In this document: one piece after another, positions 4,872 to 61,479 of the stretch
Layout of the letters: the number at the start of each line of letters is the position of its first letter
How positions within the stretch are numbered: the first letter of the stretch is position 1
Origin: Adineta vaga
Taxonomy: Eukaryota; Animalia; Rotifera
Direction of reading: 5' to 3'
DNA: 64,000 nt
Assembly: GCA_021613535.1 (NCBI GenBank)
Contig: CP075493.1
Coordinates: forward strand, 7,564,001-7,628,000
Made by a program: the position numbers and the translations under genes
The notes under the pieces: model-generated
Database searches by the model: none
The model's input: the letters and a program-made list of their open reading frames with translations, nothing else
Told to the model about the DNA's origin: nothing

Positions 4872-6271
4872 ATGGCTATAACAAAACTTGATATTTCATG
4901 TATATGGGGTGGTACTCTGGCTGGTATTTTACTTAGAAATGAAAGTGCTTTGACACGAAAAATTGGAGATACAATGACGAAAATTATTGGTATTCACGGA
5001 TGGCTTGATAATTTGAATTCATTGTTACCATTAGCAAAACAACTTGTCGATCGAAATCCAAGTGAGAAGAAATCTTTCATTAACGACAACAGCAATAATA
5101 ATCTGTATTCTTTTTAATTAGATTATGAAATCTATTTGTACGATCGAGCTGGTCATGGATTTTCTAGTCATATACCCAAAGGTTTTGATTATTCCCAGGC
5201 ACATAATTTACAAGATATTCGTACAATAATTCAAAGTAAGTTCATTGCTTTACTGATCGAAATCACTTCAGTTTCTTCTTATTTTGGTGTAGGTCTTGGT
5301 TGGCATAAAGAAAAATTTTCAATCATTAGTCATAGTTATGGAGCAATTTTAGGAATGACTGTAAAAATATTCTTCAATTTTAACTAAAACATTTTTCATC
5401 ATTTACATATTACTTTGCTAGTATGCTGCAAGTTATCCAGACGAAATATCATGTCTTGTAACGCTCGACGCAGTACCTCATATAGAGAACACAAGCCAAA
5501 ATTTCTTCGAAGTACAAGGTAGTCGAATCGATAAAAGTCTGGAATTTCATAAGAAACCAGCGAGAAATTTTGAACTGAATTTAACATTTGAAAAAGCAGT
5601 TGAATTGTAAGTTGATTTGAATCAAAAATGATAATATAGTATCATCATTCATTGATTTAGAACACGAGTAACAAGAGAAGGTATTACAGATGAAGCTGCT
5701 CGATTATTAACAGAACGATCTATTCGTCTAGATACAAGTACGTATCTTTCTTATCTTTCTTTCAATTATTAAAATACCTATATTCTGTAGAAAACAAAAT
5801 ACAATTCACTCGAGATGAAGCATTAAAAATAGTTAGTAAAAAATACATATATCTATTCTGTAAAAGAATACTAATTTTGTGTATAGCCGTCATTAATTCC
5901 GTTCACAGCTGAGATGAGTAAAAATGCAATTGAGCATATGAAAGCATCTATTCTTTTTATTGGGTATGTTCTTTTCGAGATGTATTGATTGAAGAATTTC
6001 CATCTATTTCAAGTGCTACAAATCCACAATGGCCAAGAGCTGGACAAACTCTTGATTATTTAAAAGAAAAAAATCCAAATGTAAGTAAATATCTCATCTG
6101 TAACGTAATTCTTCTTGTATTATTATTTTCTTATTATAGTTTGAAACGATGTTCATTGATGGGCCACATCATTTTCATATGACGCACGTTCAAGAAGTTA
6201 CAGAACGGATTGAACAATATTTTAACAAATATATACCACGATCTTCCACATCTATTCCAACTGACAGTTGA
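4872..6271 (+). CDS. SERHL-like alpha/beta hydrolase, paralog 4; ends SIPTDS*
   Basis: HGWLDN, SHSYG and IDGPHHFHM motifs. Stop TGA 6269-6271. Confidence 0.88.
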
Positions 6272-16260: not shown

Positions 16261-19200
16261 ATGACAAGTCACGTACATCAAATGTTACTTTGGTTAAAAG
16301 CATTTAAAACGGTCTGGTTACTAGAAAATATTCAGGAAGATATTCATCTACGTGAATTAATTATAGCAAAACTTAGTGAACTTGAAAATTTAATCAATGG
16401 TAATTCACGAATATCTGTTGGAGAGCGAATAGAAAATTCAATTCATTCTCTGTTTTTTTTTACATAGTCAATATTGAAGATGAAGAAGAATATTATCGTG
16501 CTAAATTACTCTACGATCATAGTTCAAGTAATAGTGATACGGAACAAATAACGTCTGATTTAATACCAGCTGTTGAAAATGTCAGACTTACATCTACAGA
16601 CAATCGAAATGATGAAGAACAAGCAAGACAAGCTTTGTTAGAAGACAGTGATAATAGTGATATTGAACAAGAAGTTGAAAGTATCATTCGACCAGCGATT
16701 TGTTTGAAACGTATTTCTCAACAGGATGCTGAACTTTATATGCCATTAGCATGGAGAAATGGTAAATTATAAGTTAAAATATTATGTTTATGTATATATA
16801 AATTCATCTCTTTAGAAGATTTCAAAACATCTACTGAAAAAGGCTCTCGAACGAAGCAATCGAGCACACCAACAAACAGTAATGATGGTAAATATAATGC
16901 TTTTTATTCATTCAGTTCGAATGTCATTTTCAATTCTAGCTGCTGGTAATTCGAATACATTTGAAAATATAACTAATAATGAAAAATCATGTAAACGAAG
17001 GTCACACACATCTGATAATGATCAAATTGATAAATCATCAAAAGCACGTAAAAACAATGAGACGTCAACAACGAGTTCAACATCTGATGATGATGATGAT
17101 TATACTATTAAATATCGAACAAGAAGACAATCAATCTCGAATAAAGTCGATAAAACACCAAGTAAATCACATCGATCGAGAAGAAATTCACATCGAAAAA
17201 AAGAGGTTATTATTAATTATAATTCATCACCTGAAGAAAACCAAGTGCTCTCGGATCATTCTGTTAATGCTGATGGCGATCAAAATCTAATGGATAATAA
17301 TAATGAATCAGAAAATCATGATCAAGAATCTGAAATGCCCTTACGTGCAACATTGTCCGAGAAACTGACGAAAAAAACTAATAATGAAACAAATAATGTT
17401 GTAGAAAACATATCAAATGATGAAATGAATCCACCATCAGCATCCGAATCCGATCATGATCGGTAAATATTTACAATTATAAATGTAAAAAGATTCTTTG
17501 AAACAATATGTTTAGATCAATCGTGAATGTTACATCCTATAGTCATTTACTTAATCAATCTAAATCATTATCAGAATCTGAAGATGATGAAAATCCAAAG
17601 ACGAAAAAGTCATCGAAAACTTCCAAACGTGTATTACCATCATCACCAAATTCAGATGTATCAACTGTAAAGTACAAAAAGGCAAAAACTGTGATCAAAC
17701 ATCGTGCTGATTTATCATTGTCTACTGATAATAGCGACAATGACTCAGTATGTATAATTATTTCATTTTCTAAGGAAAAAAATTCATCAGAAATGTTGTT
17801 ACGCAATAAATTCTAGAGGTAAGCATTATAAATACATCATTTTCTCTACTGTAGACTTCAACAGTTGAGGAAGCTACAACTTCATCTTCACGTCGAATTC
17901 GAATTCAACGTTCATCTTCCGAAGAATCCAATGTTAGCAATGAAATACTTTCTAAAAAGTCCAACGATCGACGTAAAAAAGCAACTGTTTCCAAGAAAAA
18001 AAAGAAAAAGTCCTCATCATCATCAACAACAACGAGTGATGACAATGGAACTAATCGGTCAAAATCTAAAAAATCCAAATCGAAATTATCTGATGATGAT
18101 AGTGATGAAAGTTCTGATGACGAAAATAAATCTCCATCAAAACGAAAACATGGTCGAAAAAATATACGTAAAATTCTTGATGATAAAGAATTAGATATTC
18201 AAACAAAAGATGCGATTGAAGCTGAACAAGAACGTCGTAAACGTATTGCTGAAAAACAAAAAGAATACAATGAAACATTACTTGAACAATCTTCATTTCA
18301 TTCAAATAATGAAGCTGATCAAACAAATCATCGACTTATTCTTGAATTAGATAAAATAACAAATGAACCGTTAATTGAAGTTTCACCTGCTCTAGTCGAA
18401 CAACTTAAACCGCATCAATGTGAAGGCGTACGATTCTTATGGAATAATGTTTTCGAATCGATCGAAGCAATTCAAAAGAGAAAACATAATGGAAATGGTT
18501 GTATTCTTGCACATTGTATGGGTTTAGGAAAAACATTACAAATTATTAGTTTTATTCACACAATTTTTAACTATGATCAAGTAACAAATGTTAAAACATG
18601 TCTTGTTCTATGTCCAATTAATGCAGGTAAGAATAACTTTGATTGTGAATTAGAAAAAAATGAAAAGATTCGTTGAATTAATCTAGCACTTAACTGGTCA
18701 AATGAATTTGATCATTGGTTAAAAAATATTGAACCACCTGTTGATCATTATCAACTAACAACAATCAAAACAAATTTACGTGCTAGCCATTTGAATTATT
18801 GGTATGAAAATGGTGGAGTTATGATTATGGGCTATGAAATGTATCGACGATTGGCAAATGGTTTTGGAATTAAAAGTAAAAACGCAAAAGCAAATGCATA
18901 TAGATGTCTCGTTGATCCTGGACCGGATATTGTTGGTAAATAGTTAATAAATGGGTTTTAAAAATGATCATTTCGAAAACTTTTATTTGTAGTTGCTGAT
19001 GAAGGACATATTTTGAAGAATGCTCAAACTGCTTTAGCAAAATGTTTATCGAAAATTAAAACACTCCGTCGAATTGTTTTAACTGGTACACCATTACAAA
19101 ATAATTTAATTGAATAGTAATGAACTGTTTTTTTTTCCGTCGTTTCATTTCATATTTTGATTTATTGATTTAGTTTTTGCATGGTCTCATTTATAAAACC

Positions 19201-24355: not shown

Positions 24356-25383
24356 TTAAATAAATAATAAAAAATCGATAGATTGTAGCACAATTATAAG
24401 CATAGACAATGACATGACGTTTTTATACGATAAGTTCTTCATATAAATAGTCGCATTTCTAACACAGCATGAATAGTCCGGTATCGATGATGAAATTTCC
24501 TCTGGAAAACTTCTATATACGATTCGATCATATAATGGTTGTGGACCACGATAATCTTCAAAATAGATATTCTTTCGAAAACTGTCGAATTCACTTTCAG
24601 TGAAGGCAATTGCTACTTTAAACATTGTCCATATAATACCTTCAGTACATGGTGGTGTTGTGAATGATCCTTCATAACGCCAGAAATCATTCAGATGATT
24701 TCCGAACAATAATCCTAGGTTTAAATCAAACAGCAGAGTGCTGTTTACTGCTTGTAAATGTTGGCCAGCGTCGAAATATCTTATCCATTCTTCTATTGTG
24801 GAATTTGACGTTTGAGAAATTGTTGTAATCGTTTCGTTCATAGTCATATTTCGAACACTTTCCATAAATATACCTAGTACAGCTATACTTTGTGTTTCTG
24901 GATTCAAATGAACAAAATGAATTTCGCCTGCATATTTTTTTCCATTACTAAAAGTAAATCAAAGAAATTAATAGGTGCTTTTATCGATGAAAATCTCGTT
25001 TACACTTGATGTTCACTACCGGATTTATAATTTTCTCCCCAATGAAGATGAAAATTAACAAAATGATATGTTCCATTTAAGCCACCTCCTGTTAAAAGCA
25101 ATGGTGTTGAACCATTACCAGCATATCTACCTATAACCGTATGTCCAGTATTTTGAAGTGTAAAATTGTGCGTGAAATTATAAGCTGATGCAAATTGAAA
25201 AGGAGTAAAAGATTGATATGTAGTACATCCTGTTCGAATATTGATTGGTGATTGTGAATGTTTAGCACATGATGGATATGTATCACTCCAAACATCAGGC
25301 CCTAAATCATGATAATTCCACAATTCACAAGAAACATATTGGATGATAGACAGTAATAAAGTTATGAAAATAAACAATTGCAT
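24356..25383 (-). CDS. Alpha carbonic anhydrase, secreted or GPI-anchored type, 2 exons
   Basis: Signal peptide, QSPINI, NTGHT, FHLHW, GSEH, EIHFVH, YEGSFTTPPCTEG and a hydrophobic C-terminus. Confidence 0.93.
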
Positions 25384-25798
25384 GATTATTTCATTCTTGT
25401 CAAAATCAAGAATGACCTAGTAGACTTAATAGTTGAAATATACAGAAAGGAAAAGAAAAGAAATCTTTTACATCACATATATAGAATTCAACATTCATTG
25501 AGTATATATCGACATGTACTAATTGTACAATTTTACTTTTTTTCTATAGAAAGAAAATTATAGTTACTCCCAAAGACCTTTTTGTTATTCTATGTATTGA
25601 AATATACAAAACATGTGGATTGAATAGGTGTATTTTCGCTGTATATGAAAAACTTATTAATAATACAACAAAAAAATAATATGACAGCAACGATGGGTGC
25701 TGATCTAATCAAATAAAATATACTTTTTCAACTAATGCTTACATTTTGCGATGTGAAATTAAGAGTTTTTTACGTTCTATTTTTCTGTATATTCGCTT

Positions 25799-26848
25799 TT
25801 ATTTATTATTTAAGAAAATAATAAAAAAAGATATAGTAGAAATTACTAAGAAGACGTTCAATGTTATCTTATATGTATCACTTGAACAACGATGAAAATC
25901 TGGTATTGTAGAAATAGTTTCTTTTGGAAAACTTCGATACACTACTCGATTATAGAGCGGTTGTGGACTACGATAACCATGAAAAGTAATCATTTGTCGT
26001 AAAATATTAACATTTTGTTCACTAAATGCAACAGGTATTTTAAATACTGTCCAAATAATACCTTCAGTACAAGGAGGCGTCGTTAGTGAACCTTCATAAC
26101 GCCAAAAATCATTCAATTGATTGCCTATTAATGACATTAAATTCAAACGAAGAACAGTAGAATTCTTCGTTTGTTCTAGACTTTCAGCAGCAAGAAAATA
26201 CCTTTTCCACTCATTCAATGTTTTATTCGGAGTTTGAATGAGATCATTATTTAGTGAAGATAAAATTATTTTTTCATCGGTTTTTAGATCATAACTACTT
26301 TGTATAAAGAATCCAAGAACAGCTGATTGAGATGTTTCAGGATTTCTATGAATAAGATGAATCTCGCCTGTATATTTTTTGCCATCTCTAATAAAAGATA
26401 AGAATAGAAGCTCTTTGTTTAAATCGATTAATCAATAAGAATTTCCTTACACTTGATGTTCACTACCGGATTTATAATTTTCACCCCAATGAAGATGAAA
26501 ACCAACAAATTCAAAGATTCCATTTAGATTACCTCCTGATAATTTCAATAATGATGAATTTCCGCTAGCAAAAGTGCCAACAATCGTATGGCCATTATTC
26601 GAAAGTATGAAATCATGTGCTCGATCATATGCGGATGTGAAATTAAATGGTGTAAAAGATCGATAACTAGTGCAGGCTGTTTGTATGAGAATTGGTGATT
26701 GAAAATGTCCATTACATGACGGATATGTATCACTCCAAACATCAGGTCCTTTGCTCTCATAATTCCAATCGGAACCAGAAGTTAACTGAATAATACTTGT
26801 CGATAATAAGGTAATAATAAACATCTGTAATTTGCAATGCAATTTCAT
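25799..26848 (-). CDS. Alpha carbonic anhydrase, tandem paralog, 2 exons
   Basis: Signal peptide, QSPI, NNGHT, FHLHW, GSEH, EIHLIH, YEGSLTTPPCTEG and a hydrophobic tail. Confidence 0.93.
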
Positions 26849-50867: not shown

Positions 50868-52291
50868 TACGGAATCCAAAATCATATAGTACATTTCATT
50901 TTCTTTTATGTGATATCGATACTTTTCTTTTTTTAAATTTAATCTATACATCTAAGTAAACATTCGTACTGAAAATAAACCTTGAATATATACACTGTAC
51001 TTGAGGTTATTTTGTATGAATCAATTGAATCATTTTTCATTATAATAAATATCTCATGAGATTTCTAAAAAGATTTCTCTTGAGATTACTTAAATAAGAT
51101 CGAAACAGTACCGTTATATTCATTGTTTTTATTCATCCTCATTAATTCTATTTATTTTTATCAAAATATGTACCTAAGATAAGAACTATTCGACTAGAAC
51201 TAAATCGATTAGGTTAGAAGTTGAAAAAAACATCGAACAAACTTTAATTATCGTCTGAATGACAGAACAGAAGAACCTTGACGTTGTACCATTGAAATAA
51301 TGAGTCTCAATGTAAAAATTTTTAAAAAACTCATAAATTAGTTTTCTTCTACCATTGAATGTATATATAAAGCCTTGAAAATGCATTTTAATTGAAGCTA
51401 AAACATTACAGAGATGAAGTGTTTTTACAAATGATTGGAAAGAAAAACTAATTTAGGGAATTGAAAATAGATTGTTAATAAGTATAGTCATTCCAGAAAA
51501 TAGAAAGGATTGCGTGTCTCATGCAAATATATTCATTCAGCTATGTTACTGTTATTGATATTTATGTTAAAGTTGAAGGAATCTCTCTAGATGTGAAAAA
51601 GTCTATTGAATATACTATTTCCTTTTCCTATACAACGATAAACTTATCTGTGAAGTTTGATCTGTTATAAGATCTAAGGAAATTCGAAGAGTTATTTGAA
51701 CTATTCAATTGAATTTATGATTTTCATCATATCTTTCTCTTCAAAAATGTTCTATTATAGAAGATTCAACTACAACAATAAACTATCTGAATAATGATAG
51801 ATCTGTTTCTATTCGTTTGCATAAATTATTATGTAGATATTTTGGTTTCATATGATTACTAAATACGAGATGAAAAATTCTTTCCTGGAATAATTTATTT
51901 CTATTTTTATTATTAAAATAACGATGGTGACAAAAAAAGAAAATATGCTCGTTTGTTAGTTATTTTTTTCAACTCTAAAACATCAATCACATGAACAGGA
52001 AATGGATTTGAAAATTTTTCTCATTTTATATCTATAATGACAAGCAAAAAATAGAAGAAACAACATCGAAGAACAAACAGAAAATCAATCAACAAAAGAA
52101 ACAAAGAAGACAATGTAATCTTTATACATACACATACGCACACATGTTTTCTGTTTTAAATGTTTACAAAACTAGACTAATATAAAATAGATAGATACAC
52201 AGTATTTAATGTTCAAATATTTGTTTCAATTAATCCAAGGTAGTTGTTATAACCTGAGAGAGAAGAGAAAGAACGACTCATATTCATATGA

Positions 52292-54470
52292 TTAAAGTTT
52301 TGATGCTTGATGAGAATCTTCACGACTATGTAAACGTCGTCCAGCATTTAAGTCAGATACTGTACCAGCTATTATTGGTTGATTTCTATCTTCTTCTTCT
52401 TCTTCATGTTTCATTGGACCTAATTCACCACGAACAAGATGATCAACAACACCAGCTCCAATACCATCACCTAATATGTTAACTGATGTTCGAATTCGAT
52501 CTCTATAAGAAAAAAGAATAAGAAGAAGAAAAAAGAATCAGTAATAATAACTAAAATATTCATTTCCTTACAAAGCCCAATCAATAGCAAAGATAATTGT
52601 AATTTCTTTTGCAGGAATATTCACAGCTGACATAACTAAAAGCATTGTTACCAAACCAGCTGATGGAATTGATGCAGCTCCAATTGAAGCTACAGTTGCT
52701 GTTAAACTAAATTTATAAATTTATTTTATAATCTTTTCCTTCTTCTAGAGAATATCATACCTAACAATAATCAATTGACCAATACCTAATTGTCTACCCA
52801 TCAATTGGGCAAGAAAAACTGGAGCAACTGCTTCATATAAAGCTGTTCCATCTAAATCAAAAGAAAAGGACAAATTCTTCATTCCCATGTATTTTGACTA
52901 ATTCATCTTTTTTTTTTACCCATATTAACAGTTGCTCCAATTGGTAACACAAAACGCGTTACACGTCGATCTAATTTTAAATTTTCTTCCAAACATCGAA
53001 ATGTAACAGGTAATGATGCAGCACTAGAAATCATTTCCAATTCAATAATGCATTCAAATCATTTCAATTTTTTTACCTTGAACCTGTTCCAATACCTGTT
53101 AACCAAGCTTGTAGCATTCCACGATAAAATGCAAATGGATTTCGTCGTGTAACAGCATAGAAGATAATTGGTAATGTAAACAATGAATGTATAGCTAAAC
53201 CAGTTAATACGGTCAAAGCATACATTCCTAAACTTTGAGCTAATTTAATTAAATCATCTATCTCTAAGATTTTGCCTGCAACTAAAAACATTATACCAAC
53301 TGGTGAATACCTAGAGCATAGTTTCCCTATAAAATGACATTTTCTTCAATGATATGAACATACCACATGACTAGTTTAATTAATTTCATGACAATTTCAT
53401 TTAATATAAGAAAAAATTGTAACATTGGTTCTCCTCGTTTACCCATTCTTCCAATTGCAATACCAAATGCACAACAAAATGTAATCAAACCTATGTTTAT
53501 TTGTTTGTTTGTTCGATAAAAGGTCTATTTAGTAAATATGAAATTCGTTTCTTACCTAAGAAATTGGTACCAGAAACGTAACGTGTCGAAAATTTAACTT
53601 TCGTCACATTTGAATCATTCAAACGCACTGTAGAATAATCTATTTGATATGAATGATACATATACATAGAAAAATCGATCTCTTAGACATTGAATTACCT
53701 CGTGTTGTTTTAACTTGTTCAAGTGCTGCTTGAATAATATTTTCTGCGAACATGTTTCTAAATAGAAAAGAAAATCAATGGAATACTTAGTTGTAGAGCG
53801 AATCGATAGGTTTACCGGAATAAATCAAAGATGGCATCAAGTGTTGTGACATGATCAGCTTTGGGATCCTCTCCTAATAATTCTGTCCGAACTTGAGCTT
53901 TATTACCTCGTTCACCTGGTCGAATAGCTTGAACAAGTAGAATACCAAGTACAGCAGCTAATATCGTCGTACACAAGTAATATGTTAAAGCATAAAAACC
54001 TAATTTGCCACTTGATTTTGGATCGAGTACAGCTAAACCTATGGATAGAAAAAAACCAAACGAAATTATATGAAATGATTCGAAATTCATGAGTTTGTAT
54101 ATATACCAGTGATAAGACTGGATGTAATCAAAGGTAAAATAAGCATTTTAAGCATACGCATCAAAATGTCACCGGGAAACGAAAGAATCATAATCGTTTC
54201 GGCGGACGGTTTCGTCATACGACATAAAAATCCTAGTAATAAGCCGAAAAAAACACCGGCAATGGTCAATGTAAGAAGTAAATTGTCACGAAATGCACCA
54301 CAACAGCCTGTACGACCCTATTAGAAAAAGAAAATTGATCATCAAAATACAGATATGAAGAGGAAAACATCTACAGTTGAAAAATCTGCTTTATTATCAT
54401 TAATTTTTGTTCGTGGTGGATGATTTTCATCGTTGAGCATTGCTACTGTTTGTTCATGTTTTTCCATCAT
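52292..54470 (-). CDS. SLC1/EAAT excitatory amino acid transporter, multi-exon; ends ASKL*
   Basis: [61 protein letters not shown] and [12 protein letters not shown]. Confidence 0.96.
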
Positions 54471-57400
54471 ATTTAAACTAAAAAAGAATACATAGAAAAC
54501 TTTCATATTTCAACATACTTCATTGATAATTTTACCGAAGTGTGTTCATTTTTTGTGAGAACAAATAGAATAGATTGATTTCTCGAACTTTTGCAAAGAA
54601 AAACAAGTTTTATCTAGTAGACATTCAACTAACTATCGTATTTAATCATTGGATAGAAATACAATTAAGTAAATGCAGTGCAAACGAAAGAAAGAAGACG
54701 ATATTTAGGATAAGTAGAAGAAAGACTTTCTCTGTTTCTTTTTTTACTACTATTATTTCTACTTTCTTATCTAACTTAGGATCGTTCAGATTGCTTTCTA
54801 TTACTTCTTGTTTTTCTTGACATCTTATTCAAAATAAATGCACGTCTATGGTTCTATCTATACACATCTCGACATACAATATAGAATATGATGATCAAAT
54901 AAATAAATAATGAAATCTATTATTCATCTGATTTTTCCTATTCGAAAAGAAAAAATACACTTGATTAATTTCACCTACGTACACGTACACACTAACAACA
55001 ATCTAATTTGAACAGAATTCTTCTCTCTCTCACTGTTTTTCCGATGAAAATAACAATCAATGATCTTGTTTGTTCAATAGTCGTCTGCATATAGTTTAAC
55101 ATGTCGTCGATTCTACTGTGATTTTGATAATCATCTTGGATTTGATTATAAAATGAATGATCGGAAAAAGAAGAGAAAAAAGAAGTTTGACATTCTTGAA
55201 TCGTTCATTTTTAAGTATGTAAGTGATTTAATCAAATATAACAATGTAAAAGTGAATTGACTTGGAGAAATATAAGGTGAATAATATTGTTAGAGATAAT
55301 ATTCGTCTGAAGTTTAATCAAGGAATTATTAACATGATTTAATCAATAAAAAACTTCCTTTCTGGTCGTCTTTTTATCGGTATACGGTCTTCCTTCTCAC
55401 GGGCAAAAGATCATCTTTTACTTGGATAGTCAAGACTTTCATCATACTTCAGTGTAATATCGCTCCTTCTTCTTATTAAAGAAACAAAAAAAGAAAAAGA
55501 GTCTTGTTTTCAAGAATCCTTTCGTTTATTGTACGTAATTTGATATTTATTGACATCTGTGACATATTCAGAAAACTTTATCGATCTTACCTCATTTGTT
55601 GATTGTGACTTTTGTTCATTTTGTTTTTCGATTTGTCACACACTGTTGAATTAGTTATTGATAACCTAGAAAACATGTAGATTAAACAATAATAATAAAA
55701 AGTTATAATTCTCTTCGAACATTAATATTCATAAGAAGAACTCGATCGGATATTTCTCTCCTAGTTTTCTTCGATATCATAACTCACACAACGATCGTTG
55801 ACGCTAAGTGAAGATGATGACGATGATGATGATAATGTTAGTCACATCGAGTAGACATATCTTACAATCTTTGCTTAACTTTTATGAAGAATGTCTTTTT
55901 TTCTGCCACTTCTTCTCTCTCTCTCTCCCTCTCTTTTCTCTCTACGACCATAATAAAAAAAACTAATATTCTGCTAATAAAAAGAGTATATCTACTAACC
56001 ATTACCGTTTATAGGAATCTATGAAATGCTCGCCTGTGATAAAATAAGAGAGGGTAAGACGAAGGAGAGAGAGAGAGAGGCAGGAAAAATGTAGGAGAAA
56101 ATCATAATTAAACAACTGCTTGTCAAATCATGTTCTATTAGTTATCGTTCACGATATGAATTGATTTTAATAGAAAATTCTCTTCTTCTTTTTTTTTCAT
56201 TTCAAACCTATGATTGGTTTTCCAATAAAAAAAATCTTGATGCATGTCAAAAAAGAAACTGATGCATGTAGACTTTATGTTCATCACATATGAAAATATT
56301 AGAGGTATATCAAAAGAAAAATTGTAGACTCGAGGAAAAATATATGAATGTCAGAATAGCCGACGAAATAAAGATGTATTTGTTCTATTCGACATGCAAT
56401 TTCTAATAACTTACCTGATAAAAAAACTAATTCGAAAGAGTTTTTAGTTTGTCATCATATATTTCATGGAATCATTTAAACGACAGTAGTGGAGTACTTG
56501 ACTTCCAATATTACTTCCTCATTCTAATTAATTTTATGTTTCAGAGAAGAAAGAAAAGATCTGAATTTTACATGAGGGCATAAACTTAGAGTAAGATGAG
56601 ACTTGTCTATAGAGTTGATGTGTTAGATTCTTACTCTCACTCTCTTCTTTGATACAACATGACATGATAAAGAAAATGCATGTTAATAAATGCCAAAATC
56701 GATCAATGATTTTGACAATCCCTACACTATATTATGAAACATTTTGTTCAAGTCAAGTTAGATATATATCGAGGCATTTGATTGAACTTTCTATTGATTA
56801 GAAAGAATGAGAAACATTGTTTTCTACGTTGTCCAATTGACAAATTCGAAATCTGATCAAGACCTTGGAGAATAATGCATAAGATGTCAGAGTCCAAAAT
56901 CGGCTACTGATAATACCGGATAATTATTTCATATTAATCAACGAAAACGAGAAATGTGTGATTAGAAATGATTATCTTAGTCAAGGCCATTGAACGATTT
57001 TCTAGATGTAATAATATATAGAGAGAGAGAGAGAAAGAAAGGAAAGAACGGAATTAATAATGACAATCTATACTAAAGATATCTATAATAAACCTATATT
57101 ATCTTCTCTAATCATCTTTTACTTCCGTTATTCATATATATATATATATTGGATAAACTCATTGGAATTCGAAATATTTTTTCTACATGAACATCGATTA
57201 AAAACTGCTTCATATAATTTTTTTTAATTATAAGAAATAAACCATAATTTAATAGAAACATGCGCATATATATCTTATTTGTCATAGCTTCAAAATTTTT
57301 ATACAAAAACTTTCTAAATATCATTTTGTTGAAAAGAAAACTAATTGTGAACATCTGATGTTGAACACTATTTCCATCGAGGGAATTCGATGTTGAATTG

Positions 57401-57755: not shown

Positions 57756-57816
57756 AGGAAGAGTGTATACCCGGTGACTGCATAAATATCAAAGTAACCG
57801 ACTATGCAATCTTCCT
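57756..57816 (-). ncRNA. mir-36: pre-miRNA, miR-36 family; predicted 3p UCACCGGGUAUACACUCUUCCU (57777->57756)
   Basis: Hairpin arms GGAAGAUUGCAUAGUCGGUUACU / AGUCACCGGGUAUACACUCUUCC. Seed CACCGGG. Confidence 0.88.
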
Positions 57817-57875
57817 ACCAAATAATTGAAATACTTCCGGCTCGGATAAAATCGAAGACAATTGAACATATCAGA

Positions 57876-57942
57876 GGAAGAGTGTTATACCCGGTGATTT
57901 ATCTACTATTCTAAATCAAGATAACCGACTATACAATCTTCC
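57876..57942 (-). ncRNA. mir-36: pre-miRNA, miR-36 family; predicted 3p UCACCGGGUAUAACACUCUUCC (57897->57876)
   Basis: Paralog of the previous hairpin with conserved arms and a different loop. Confidence 0.88.
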
Positions 57943-58000
57943 AACGAAAGAACAAGCGATGGAATTCATGGAATATAATTATCTAATTCATTATATACTC

Positions 58001-58075
58001 GCTCAAGCTAAGTGTAGAACCCGGTGAGGAATTTGAACATAACCAACCTCTACCAAGATTTCACCTAGCCTAAGC
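58001..58075 (-). ncRNA. mir-36: pre-miRNA, miR-36 family; predicted 3p UCACCGGGUUCUACACUUAGCU (58027->58006)
   Basis: The 14-bp basal stem GCUUAGGCUAGGUG/CACUUAGCUUGAGC pairs fully, via G-U pairs, only on the minus strand. Confidence 0.85.
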
Positions 58076-58121
58076 AAAATACGGATTTGAAAAACGAATG
58101 ATAAGAAATAGTGAAAGTGCT

Positions 58122-58200
58122 CTCAATTAGGATGAGTGTGAGATCTAGTCATGAACTCGCAAAATCCACATAGACTAAATAACACAATCATGCAAATCAA
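58122..58200 (-). ncRNA. mir-279: pre-miRNA miR-279; predicted 3p UGACUAGAUCUCACACUCAUCC (58151->58130)
   Basis: Near-identical to canonical protostome miR-279 (UGACUAGAUCCACACUCAUCC, plus 1 nt). The 5p arm AUGAUUGUGUUAUUUAGUC pairs with it. Confidence 0.9.
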
Positions 58201-58389
58201 AGAGCTCTTCTCAAGAAACACAGCAATAACAACAACAATGACGTGCGTCATACAGCATGCAAATATATGAAATTGACAAAAAGAACATTGAGAATGAGCT
58301 CACCATGCAAGTCTTTTTTATAGAAATATATGGATTTTACTAGATTTACACTGATGTGATACTGAAAAGATGTAGACAAAGAAGGACGA

Positions 58390-58600
58390 ATTTGGGCGGC
58401 AGTAGACAACAATAACCGTTAAGAACAACGATGCGAATGAACGAACGGACGGACTGAACCGATGCTTGACCCTTTGTGCATTGTTTTGTATGTATACTCT
58501 GCGCGCGCGAGCGCACGCACGTCGTCGTTGTCGAAAAAAAAAAGAGAAAAAAAACGTAGATTTGTGCGCGCGCGTCCGACCGTTGTTAGCTGCTGTCTAA
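58390..58600. promoter_or_regulatory. CpG-rich patch (GCGCGCGCG, TGCGCGCGCG), candidate promoter or 5' region of the miRNA cluster
   Basis: Strong local GC/CpG excess immediately 5' (minus strand) of the hairpins. Confidence 0.4.
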
Positions 58601-59536
58601 TATGAACGACATCGTGTTTAGATATGTACATTTCTCTTTTCTCCCGTTTTTTTTGACCGAACATTGACCTGTTTCTCTTTCTTTTTCTATGTGCGCTATT
58701 TTGGCTTAGCACTCGAAGGCTATATACTTATTCGAATACTCATATGCATACACTCGTGAGCCTCTTCGATTTGTTCAGAACATCGTTCCGTTCAATCAAC
58801 ATCGATACGTTTCTCTCTCTCGTTCTGTTCTTAGCCAGACATATTGACCTTAGAGAGGAGAAGAAGAAGAGCGGGCAAATGAAGACGAAGAATTAAAATA
58901 AAAGAAAGAAGAAAAAATTGGTTGTCTCGGACACGGTATGTATCAAACGTCCGAATAACATACTTATTTTGGCTTGCAGCCAAATATATATGTAGGATGG
59001 TGAGTGGACTCACCATTATCAACACAGAAGCCATTTGAGGTGAAATGAAAGCAAAACAAACGTCTATCGGGCGTCTGTTATGTTCGAGAGTGAAGCAATT
59101 GGCCCAATCTAACGATAAGAAATAACATACCCGAAGACTGACCGACGATAATAATAGGCTTCATGTATCTTTTCATTCTTTCTCATTTGAATGATGTCCA
59201 AACGAATTTACTCCTCCGGCAAACTCCTCATAAACGAACAATGACAAACGAAAAAACTATAATGAAAGATTAGTCGTATTCGACGACAAATTCTTTTCGT
59301 TTTTTTTTCATTTCGTTTTCTTTTCGTACCATTGAACAAGACTGATGAGATCACTTGGTACTAATCAATCACTTGTTATCTTTACATTTGATGTCAACAC
59401 ATTTTTTGAATCATTTACGGTGATGATTTGTTACATCAGAAGAAAATAAATATCAAAAGCGTAGAAGAATTTTATAATTGAAGATAAATGATAAGAGTGA
59501 AAAAGAAAAGTTCATTTGAATAAGAAAAAAATAATA

Positions 59537-61098
59537 TTATTCTTCTGATTTCATAGTAATATGTTCAATCGCTGAAGCGAGCACATTTAAAACGATATCG
59601 GTTGCTTTTTGTTGCAGTTGTTCGACTAAAATTGGATCATGATCATCATAATCATCCTCAGCATCATCACGTTCGTCAACATCATTGATCACTTCAGGTG
59701 AGACGTGATATTGTTGCTCCTGTTGTTGCGAATGGTGATGATGGGATTGAGGAGGAGGAAGAGGAGGATGGTGATGATAGTGTCGATCAGAATCCTGAGT
59801 AGTTATTAATTCATATTCATCATCATTTTGTTTATGTGATGGGGTTATATTTGATGGATTGTTTTCATTGACCAACGAAAACGATATTTTATTAGCAACA
59901 TAGGACACACTACTTTGTTGAGCTGGTGACTGTTGTTGTTGTTGCTGCTGCTGTTGTTGATGTTGAGACTGACGACGATGTCGATTGCTACGATGAGTTG
60001 ATGATGATGACATAGCTCGATCAAGAGAACGTCGACCTTTAGGAAACGAAGAAAAAGATTTATTTCAAATAGAATCATATCGTAGACAAACTTCGTTTTT
60101 TCTCTGGCATTTGAATTCCCACATCAACATATCGAGCAGGATCTAACAAAACGAATAAAATCGGAATTGAAATTTTCTTCCACAATAATATTACCTTTAA
60201 TTTTCGGTAATTTATGTCGTCTTCCATACATCACTGGATTCATATTTGTTTGCCGGCTTGATCTTCCCTCGTATCTATTTGTAAGTGCATCTAAATCTTC
60301 TTGTTTTCCATCCTCATTCGAATCATAACCTGTATCTTTTCGTACGACTTCACCAGTAGTACTTGAACGTCTTTGAACTTGAAGAATTTCACGAAATTTT
60401 TTAAAATGTGATGGTTTGATATCGACTTGTTCAGGATTATTTCGATTCACAAATGTTCCATATTTATGTAAAATTTTTGAATCAACTGTATCAAAACGAT
60501 TATAACGAGCACCAGTCAAAAAATAATGACTATTATAGCCATCAGATGTTTGAAAATCGAACTTTTTTACTGTGCGATGTAATTTTTGTTGTTGTTGTTC
60601 AAGACAACGTTTGTAACGTTGTTTTTCAATCGTAGTTAAATTTGGTTCATATACACGATTTAAATGTTCAAAATTTGGATTCATTTTAATGTAACGATTG
60701 AGTATACTACATAAACAAGAAACAAAAAAAGCAAAATGTTTGGTATAGAAATGTTATAAATAACTATCAAATTTGAACACTGTTGAACTATTCCTTTTGC
60801 TGATAACAAAAATACATACTCAGTACGTCGTGGTAATCGAGAAAGTTCACTTTCGTAAAGATTATCATTACGATGTTTTAATTCAGTATCAGATAAGTAT
60901 TGAAGGAGAGCATTCGTATGAACTGGTTGCTTTTCTTGATGCTTATAGTATGTTTCATAATTATAATGCGGTGTAGGTGTTGTAGTATGACGTTCATCTT
61001 TAGTATTATATGCCTGTGTAGAACGACCCTAGAAAGACATGTTGAACTTGAAAACTTTTTTCGATGTCTCAACTTTTTACCTGATGTATAGCTGCCAT
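59537..61098 (-). CDS. Low-complexity protein with a C-terminal amphipathic helix (candidate AKAP)
   Basis: Exons join as MAAIHQ|GRSTQAY...|..MNPNFEH..LPKIK|GRRSLDRAMSSSS...KATDIVLNVLASAIEHITMKSEE*. One internal junction is uncertain. Confidence 0.6.
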
Positions 61099-61479
61099 AT
61101 TTTTAGATTCTTTCTGAAAATTTTCTTTTTTTTCTTCTTCTTCTTTGTTTTTCTAAGTTAAATAATATAAAACTATATTTGTCTATAGAATTCTTCCATC
61201 TCTATTGTTAGTAGTCTCGGTAACAGCCTCCTTGTGATTTTTATTCAATTCTGACATTTTCTGATCATTTCTTCATCGTTCTGTATTTAATACCCAATCT
61301 GTTATAAAACAAACGCACACACTTTTTAAACAAAAGAAAAAAAATAAGATAAATGAATCAATTAAAAGAAAAATAATAGACATATATTTTTTTCTCGAAT
61401 GAATCTATTTTGAATTCTTCCCAAGTAATAACATTGACGTCGAAAGTAATAGTGTTTTTTTTGTTGTTATTTTCTTGAT

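Follow-up and report, generated by a model that had tools for sequence, protein, structure and literature searches.

The locus and its features

The window analyzed here is a 64,000-nt stretch of the bdelloid rotifer Adineta vaga (C1:7564001-7628000), taken from an assembly of 100.8 Mb in six contigs with 30% GC. Within it, four hairpins lie in a row on the minus strand at a spacing of 120-130 nt: one of the miR-279 family followed by three of the miR-36 family (Table 1). On the contig, they occupy C1:7621756-7622191. A preliminary description, made by reading the letters, had pointed them out, and they are located where it had placed them, down to the 5′-ends of the predicted 3p arms. The 9-mer that begins the miR-36 arm occurs three times within 250 nt, against an expectation of 0.06 per 64 kb. 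The downstream neighbor is a gene of the SLC1/EAAT glutamate transporter family, and a conserved non-coding region lies upstream. Two stretches, 59060-59139 and 59174-59253, were considered as a fifth microRNA and set aside: they are hairpin-like, but their structure is not common across species.

Table 1. Positions, within the window, of the hairpins and of the features around them.
Feature	Position	Strand	Details
Hairpin 1, pre-miR-279	58130..58191	-	predicted mature 3p 58151-58130; star from 58191; extended stem about 58113-58213
Hairpin 2, pre-miR-36 with divergent 3′ half	58006..58068	-	predicted mature 58027-58006
Hairpin 3, pre-miR-36	57876..57940	-	predicted mature 57897-57876; basal UG at -14/-13
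Hairpin 4, pre-miR-36	57756..57814	-	predicted mature 57777-57756; extra basal helix, 57843-57836 with 57752-57745
SLC1/EAAT glutamate-transporter-family gene	52291..54479 (approximate)	-	Pfam PF00375 on two exons, exon by exon; downstream neighbor
miR-36 8-mer site CCCGGTGA, candidate target	54169..54176 (to about 54179)	-	EAAT coding sequence, FPGD codons; invariant in 11/11 copies (among L032-L046)
Putative 5′ splice site GCATG/GTGAGCT	58297..58308	-	GT at 58303-58302; 12 bases invariant in 6/6 loci, surroundings diverged
Conserved non-coding upstream region	58374..59109	-	blocks 66-75% identical to C4
DR5-like nuclear-receptor element AGGTCA-n5-CGGTCA (putative function)	58654..58670	-	identical in 5/6 loci; the sixth has a one-base variant, GGGTCA

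Folding, strand and processing signals

When each hairpin is folded as RNA, all four form on the minus strand. Folded singly on that strand, hairpin 1 has a free energy of -30.1 kcal/mol (z -4.9) and hairpin 2 of -37.3 kcal/mol (z -6.9). Hairpins 3 and 4 are of moderate stability only (-22.5 kcal/mol, z -2.3, and -20.7 kcal/mol, z -2.1, the latter in a short window). Including the conserved basal helix of hairpin 4, which is kept in six copies, brings its energy to -32.8 kcal/mol. MirGeneDB expects the precursor of a microRNA to be a hairpin some 60 nt long, the arms of which pair at 16 or more bases. All four predicted precursors are of this kind: hairpins 1 to 4 are 62, 63, 65, and 59 nt long, with 17-19 mature bases paired.

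Folding alone leaves the strand of hairpin 4 ambiguous (-23.2 on the plus vs. -20.7 kcal/mol on the minus strand in the short window). The minus strand had been favored from the beginning on account of G-U pairs, and this call is borne out by the comparison of species, where G-U/A-U and U-G/C-G swaps preserve the pairs on the minus strand only. In its lower stem, hairpin 2 also has three double-sided (compensatory) changes that support the minus strand.

The reading of the miR-36 copies needs some adjustment. Two of them had been described as having near-identical arms and unrelated loops; the loops do differ, but the first five loop bases are the same in hairpins 3 and 4. Likewise, hairpin 2 keeps the seed and has a diverged 3′ half, as had been noted, but a five-base core is common to all four mature arms. 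Of the Microprocessor motifs (basal UG, apical UGU, and CNNC), which are supportive rather than required, hairpin 3 has the basal UG, hairpin 1 has UGU at its apical end, and CNNC follows hairpins 3 and 4 in certain copies only.

Conservation across homoeologues and species

The whole cluster has exactly one further copy in the genome, at C4:5842094-5842611, which is 73% identical and has the hairpins in the same order. The C4 copy is embedded in collinear flanking genes with a mean identity of about 71%, and is compatible with being a homoeologue that stems from the genome duplication of bdelloids (PMC12256650). Elsewhere along the two homoeologues, there is an inversion of about 10-14 kb (C1 37772-47426 vs. 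C4:5800407-5814330), and tandem-duplicated genes at 24473-26770 have several C4 counterparts.

Syntenic loci in other bdelloids were fetched using the neighboring single-exon SH3BGR gene, whose closest relatives are in Adineta and Rotaria, as the anchor. Exact-match look-ups of two A. vaga proteins had no result. All four hairpins recur, in unchanged order, in A. steineri, in Rotaria socialis, and in two metagenomic (ENA) contigs. In R. sordida, the three miR-36 hairpins are present and the position of miR-279 falls beyond the end of the locus. In all, six to seven bdelloid loci have the hairpins in this order. Loci L032 and L035-L040 stop short of the cluster position and are uninformative; they do not represent losses.

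The preliminary description had staked its proposal in part on conservation of the arms in related species. Across six full copies, 87 of the 88 mature positions are invariant. The mature arms of hairpins 1, 2, and 3 are unchanged (22/22 each), and that of hairpin 4 has a single change, in C4 (21/22). The star region of hairpin 1 is also fully invariant (25/25), while in those of miR-36, 15-18 of 22-27 positions are unchanged. The loops are far more variable (5/19 invariant in hairpin 2 and 3/15 in hairpin 4), and in the five spacers only 6 of 207 positions are invariant. Across the same copies, stem substitutions mostly keep the pairs on the minus strand. A conservation gradient of mature over star over loop over flanks, together with structure-keeping changes, is the pattern that functional microRNA genes typically show.

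As the cluster is intact on C4 and in both genera, the triplication of miR-36 predates the genome duplication and the split of Adineta and Rotaria. The local miR-36 expansion proposed earlier thus stands as a tandem expansion, but it is not a recent one, being common to the two genera.

Family identity and previous annotation

The family assignments made at the outset hold. Hairpin 1 carries the 3p seed GACUAGA and a family-like 3′ half (cf. bgl-miR-279-3p; PMC7328434). The three others carry CACCGGG, the seed of the MIR-36 family (PMC3653858), on their 3p arms, and this seed is invariant in all loci (cf. bgl-miR-36a-3p; PMC7328434).

Profile searches were less forthcoming. Scanning the window with Rfam at the gathering threshold gave no matches. 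The mir-279 model (RF00754) aligns over its full length to hairpin 1 with 35.3 bits (E 1.2e-4), under the gathering score of 56, and in the genome it has only two matches, of 35.3 and 33.7 bits, both below 56. The mir-36 model (RF00685) gave no match at E ≤ 1 in the genome, with 49 candidates scored. This zero reflects the reach of the model, because just 49 candidates were scored and because genome-based MirMachine also gave zero in all rotifers. With mir-279 below the cut-off and mir-36 absent, profile searches therefore under-call the locus. Other matches to a miR-36 12-mer in the genome (on C2, at C4:5140919, and on C6) form no pre-miRNA hairpin, and neither 154 kb of C1 nor 120 kb of C4 contained any further MIR-279 or MIR-36 hairpins. 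A genome search with the mir-996 model found nothing; against hairpin 2 that model gives a weak match (E 0.064). It should also be noted that on the minus strand the mature arms of miR-279 (58130-58151) and miR-36 (57876-57897) are alike at 15 of 22 positions.

A. vaga is represented in MirGeneDB 3.0 with 129 microRNAs (PMC11701709; PMC12256650), and the cluster is very probably annotated there already. The supplement of Herlyn 2025 (PMC12256650) contains an expression sheet based on MirGeneDB, in which eight Mir-279 and seven Mir-36 genes are expressed in A. vaga: Mir-279-P21 to P24, a and b, and Mir-36-P26a/b, P27, P28a/b, and P29a/b. All of them have reads in two A. vaga libraries, and the libraries named are SRR3185495 and SRR3187155; Mir-36-P26 reaches 17,000-19,000 RPM (PMC12256650). 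Most likely, the hairpins and their C4 copies are three Mir-36 a/b pairs and one Mir-279 a/b pair of MirGeneDB 3.0. The species and the families are the same, the three Mir-36 a/b pairs agree with three hairpins on two homoeologues, and the near-equal counts within P21a/b or P23a/b agree with a miR-279 that has the same mature and star in its two copies. The set in MirGeneDB exceeds the cluster, however, and six more Mir-279 genes and one more Mir-36 gene must lie elsewhere in the genome. That the eight Mir-279 of the Herlyn table are the four hairpins of the cluster on each of the two homoeologues (2 x 4) was judged unlikely, as the expression sheet names eight Mir-279 and seven Mir-36 genes separately.

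The family table of the same paper gives Mir-36 as zero in all 25 syndermatans, among ten zero columns for A. vaga, and MIR-36 is counted among ten bdelloid losses (PMC12256650). Supplementary File 1 is thus inconsistent, with zero in the Mir-36 table and seven A. vaga genes in the expression sheet. In that sheet, Mir-36 values are non-zero for Brachionus and Seison as well. A loss of MIR-36 in all rotifers is directly contradicted by its presence, at three copies for each homoeologue, in no fewer than four bdelloid species. The family being present in bdelloids, the count of bdelloid losses would therefore be nine, not ten. With two protostome microRNA families that are ancient, and a species already curated in MirGeneDB 3.0, the cluster has little discovery value. 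What it still offers is the correction of the MIR-36 loss, and the donor, the DR5-like element, and the EAAT site as testable leads to regulation and targets.

The upstream region

Upstream of the hairpins, a putative splice donor is invariant in all loci compared, which suggests that the cluster is intronic. The ATG before this donor was considered as a conserved EAAT start and rejected, as it is in frame in C4 and out of frame in C1. A second donor-like motif, ATG/GTGAGT at 59014-59008 (-), is kept in five of six loci and lost on C4; it may mark a further leader exon.

The conserved region beyond the donor persists on C4 although the protein gene upstream of it has no match there. It is probably not coding, because it contains frame-breaking indels, on account of which the ORF at 58419-58712 was rejected. 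The region probably serves the primary transcript as promoter and 5′ leader. Within it lies the DR5-like element. RGGTCA half-sites are enriched, 920 bp containing three where shuffles have 0.43 (4/500). Two more half-sites, at 58845-58850 and 58467-58472 (-), are conserved across Adineta and Rotaria, and the one at 58850 (-), which is preceded by a pyrimidine tract, also looks like a splice acceptor. A CCAAT-box-like motif at about 59095-59112 (-), in the upstream block, is conserved in all six loci. Farther upstream there is a gene of two exons and without a Pfam match at 59537-61100 (-). It found no match in the C4 region that was fetched, where collinearity stops at about 59109. A. steineri as well as R. 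socialis has a gene call at that distance upstream, which may be homologous. An Rfam scan of the A. steineri upstream region (locus L033) gave low-complexity matches far below cut-off only.

Biogenesis, role and possible host

In sum, we are highly confident that the locus is a canonical polycistronic bdelloid microRNA cluster of one MIR-279 and three MIR-36 genes. The close spacing and the co-conservation of the four hairpins argue for a common primary transcript. As in general microRNA biology, RNA polymerase II would start in the conserved upstream region. Drosha/Pasha would cut all four hairpins out of what is probably an intron that begins at the conserved donor. After cutting by Dicer, with predicted 2-nt overhangs, the 3p arms, which start with U and are the predicted choice, would be loaded into Argonaute. 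Repression would fall on mRNAs carrying sites for the seed CACCGGG, supplied by three genes, or for GACUAGA, supplied by a single gene. The three CACCGGG genes may serve to boost the dose, with two different 3′ halves. The miR-36 copies themselves arose by tandem duplication before the bdelloid genome was duplicated.

By analogy with the family elsewhere, the role is most likely developmental repression in embryos or proliferating cells. A narrower proposal, raised in the preliminary description, is a maternal or egg module that would be loaded in oocytes or clear maternal mRNA, as with C. elegans mir-35-42. The cluster's miR-36 shares its seed with that family, miR-36-3p is among the most abundant egg miRNAs of S. 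japonicum, and Ascaris miR-36 is embryonic (PMC3653858). Early-embryo clusters of insects join mir-279 to the mir-309/3/3791 families (PMC4691753), and mir-3/309 has been grouped with mir-36 (PMC4238352). Mir-36 is also abundant in the A. vaga libraries, at up to about 19,000 RPM (PMC12256650). Expression elsewhere speaks for a broader use. In Capitella, values in the Mir-36 row, which across species may not be strict orthologues, peak in the larva at 5494 RPM, with 47 in 2-4-cell embryos and <1 in the female body (PMC12256650). Schistosome miR-36 is high in cercariae and schistosomula too (PMC3653858), and planarian miR-36b is enriched in neoblasts (PMC3854530). We consider the maternal module a tentative and rather unlikely reading; a wider role in embryos or proliferating cells is the likelier one.

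The cluster might also reside in the first intron of the EAAT transcript and feed back on it through the conserved site in its coding sequence. The gene is on the same strand, 2.4-5.9 kb away, and syntenic in all bdelloid loci, and the invariant donor lies upstream of the hairpins. An acceptor-like AG (54479-54478) a few bases before the EAAT start (ATG at 54470) in most copies would allow EAAT to be the host. Bdelloids use spliced leaders, however, and the acceptor could be a trans-splice site or part of a leader specific to EAAT. The 8-mer, unchanged in 11 of 11 copies, falls in the sole run of four invariant codons of the exons examined, against a background of just 9 unchanged four-fold sites out of 104, and it uses the Pro codon CCC, otherwise rare. 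Against its being a target, it sits in a protein motif, FPGD, that is itself invariant, overlaps a small conserved local hairpin (about 54170-54207), and is partly matched in an unlinked SLC1 paralogue (L049), which also has TTT CCC GG. Moreover, it is one site, found post hoc, and microRNA sites in coding sequences are generally weak. On balance, we regard this reading, with the cluster in an EAAT intron and feedback through the coding site, as unlikely. Less probable still, and in our view quite doubtful, is the fuller scheme of a nuclear-receptor-driven intronic unit of the EAAT transcript whose three miR-36 repress their own host via the coding site. If true, it would be a pan-bdelloid feedback loop and provide the first concrete target for spiralian miR-36.

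Finally, that the hairpins are not microRNAs, but chance hairpins, a repeat, or cis-regulatory DNA conserved for a neighboring gene, could appeal to the sub-threshold Rfam scores and to the two z-scores near -2, and yet has next to no probability: it is effectively refuted by the gradient from arm to star to loop to spacer and by the pair-keeping substitutions, and the match to known families and the occurrence at just two loci in the genome speak against it as well.

Comparison with known systems

Close parallels to the four microRNA genes are found in other spiralians. Biomphalaria miR-36 and miR-279 (bgl-miR-36a-3p and bgl-miR-279-3p; PMC7328434) have the same seeds, the 3p arm, the 5′ U, and similar 3′ halves. 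Outside the seed, the rotifer arms depart from spiralian miR-36 and miR-279 at a few bases, and miR-36 is present here three times in tandem. Linkage of the two families in other spiralians, mentioned in the preliminary description, is not stated in the literature searched. To judge from sequence likeness, it is possible that MIR-279 and MIR-36 are of remote common origin, that is, ancient paralogues.

C. elegans mir-35-42 has both the seed CACCGGG and a tandem multi-copy layout, as has the rotifer cluster. The two expansions are presumably independent. To our knowledge, an essential maternal/embryonic function of the mir-35-42 type is established only in nematodes. Nor is it unusual for this seed family to expand in tandem; mir-3791 is present in 34 copies in a spider (PMC4987109). 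Among insects, the clusters mir-309~6, mir-279e~2944c, and mir-9d~3791 combine mir-279 members with mir-3/309/3791, regarded as mir-36-related (PMC4691753; PMC4238352). These early-embryo clusters are unlike the rotifer one in that the seed of mir-3/309 is CACUGG, extra families are included, and they evolve fast, whereas the rotifer cluster has been static across bdelloids.
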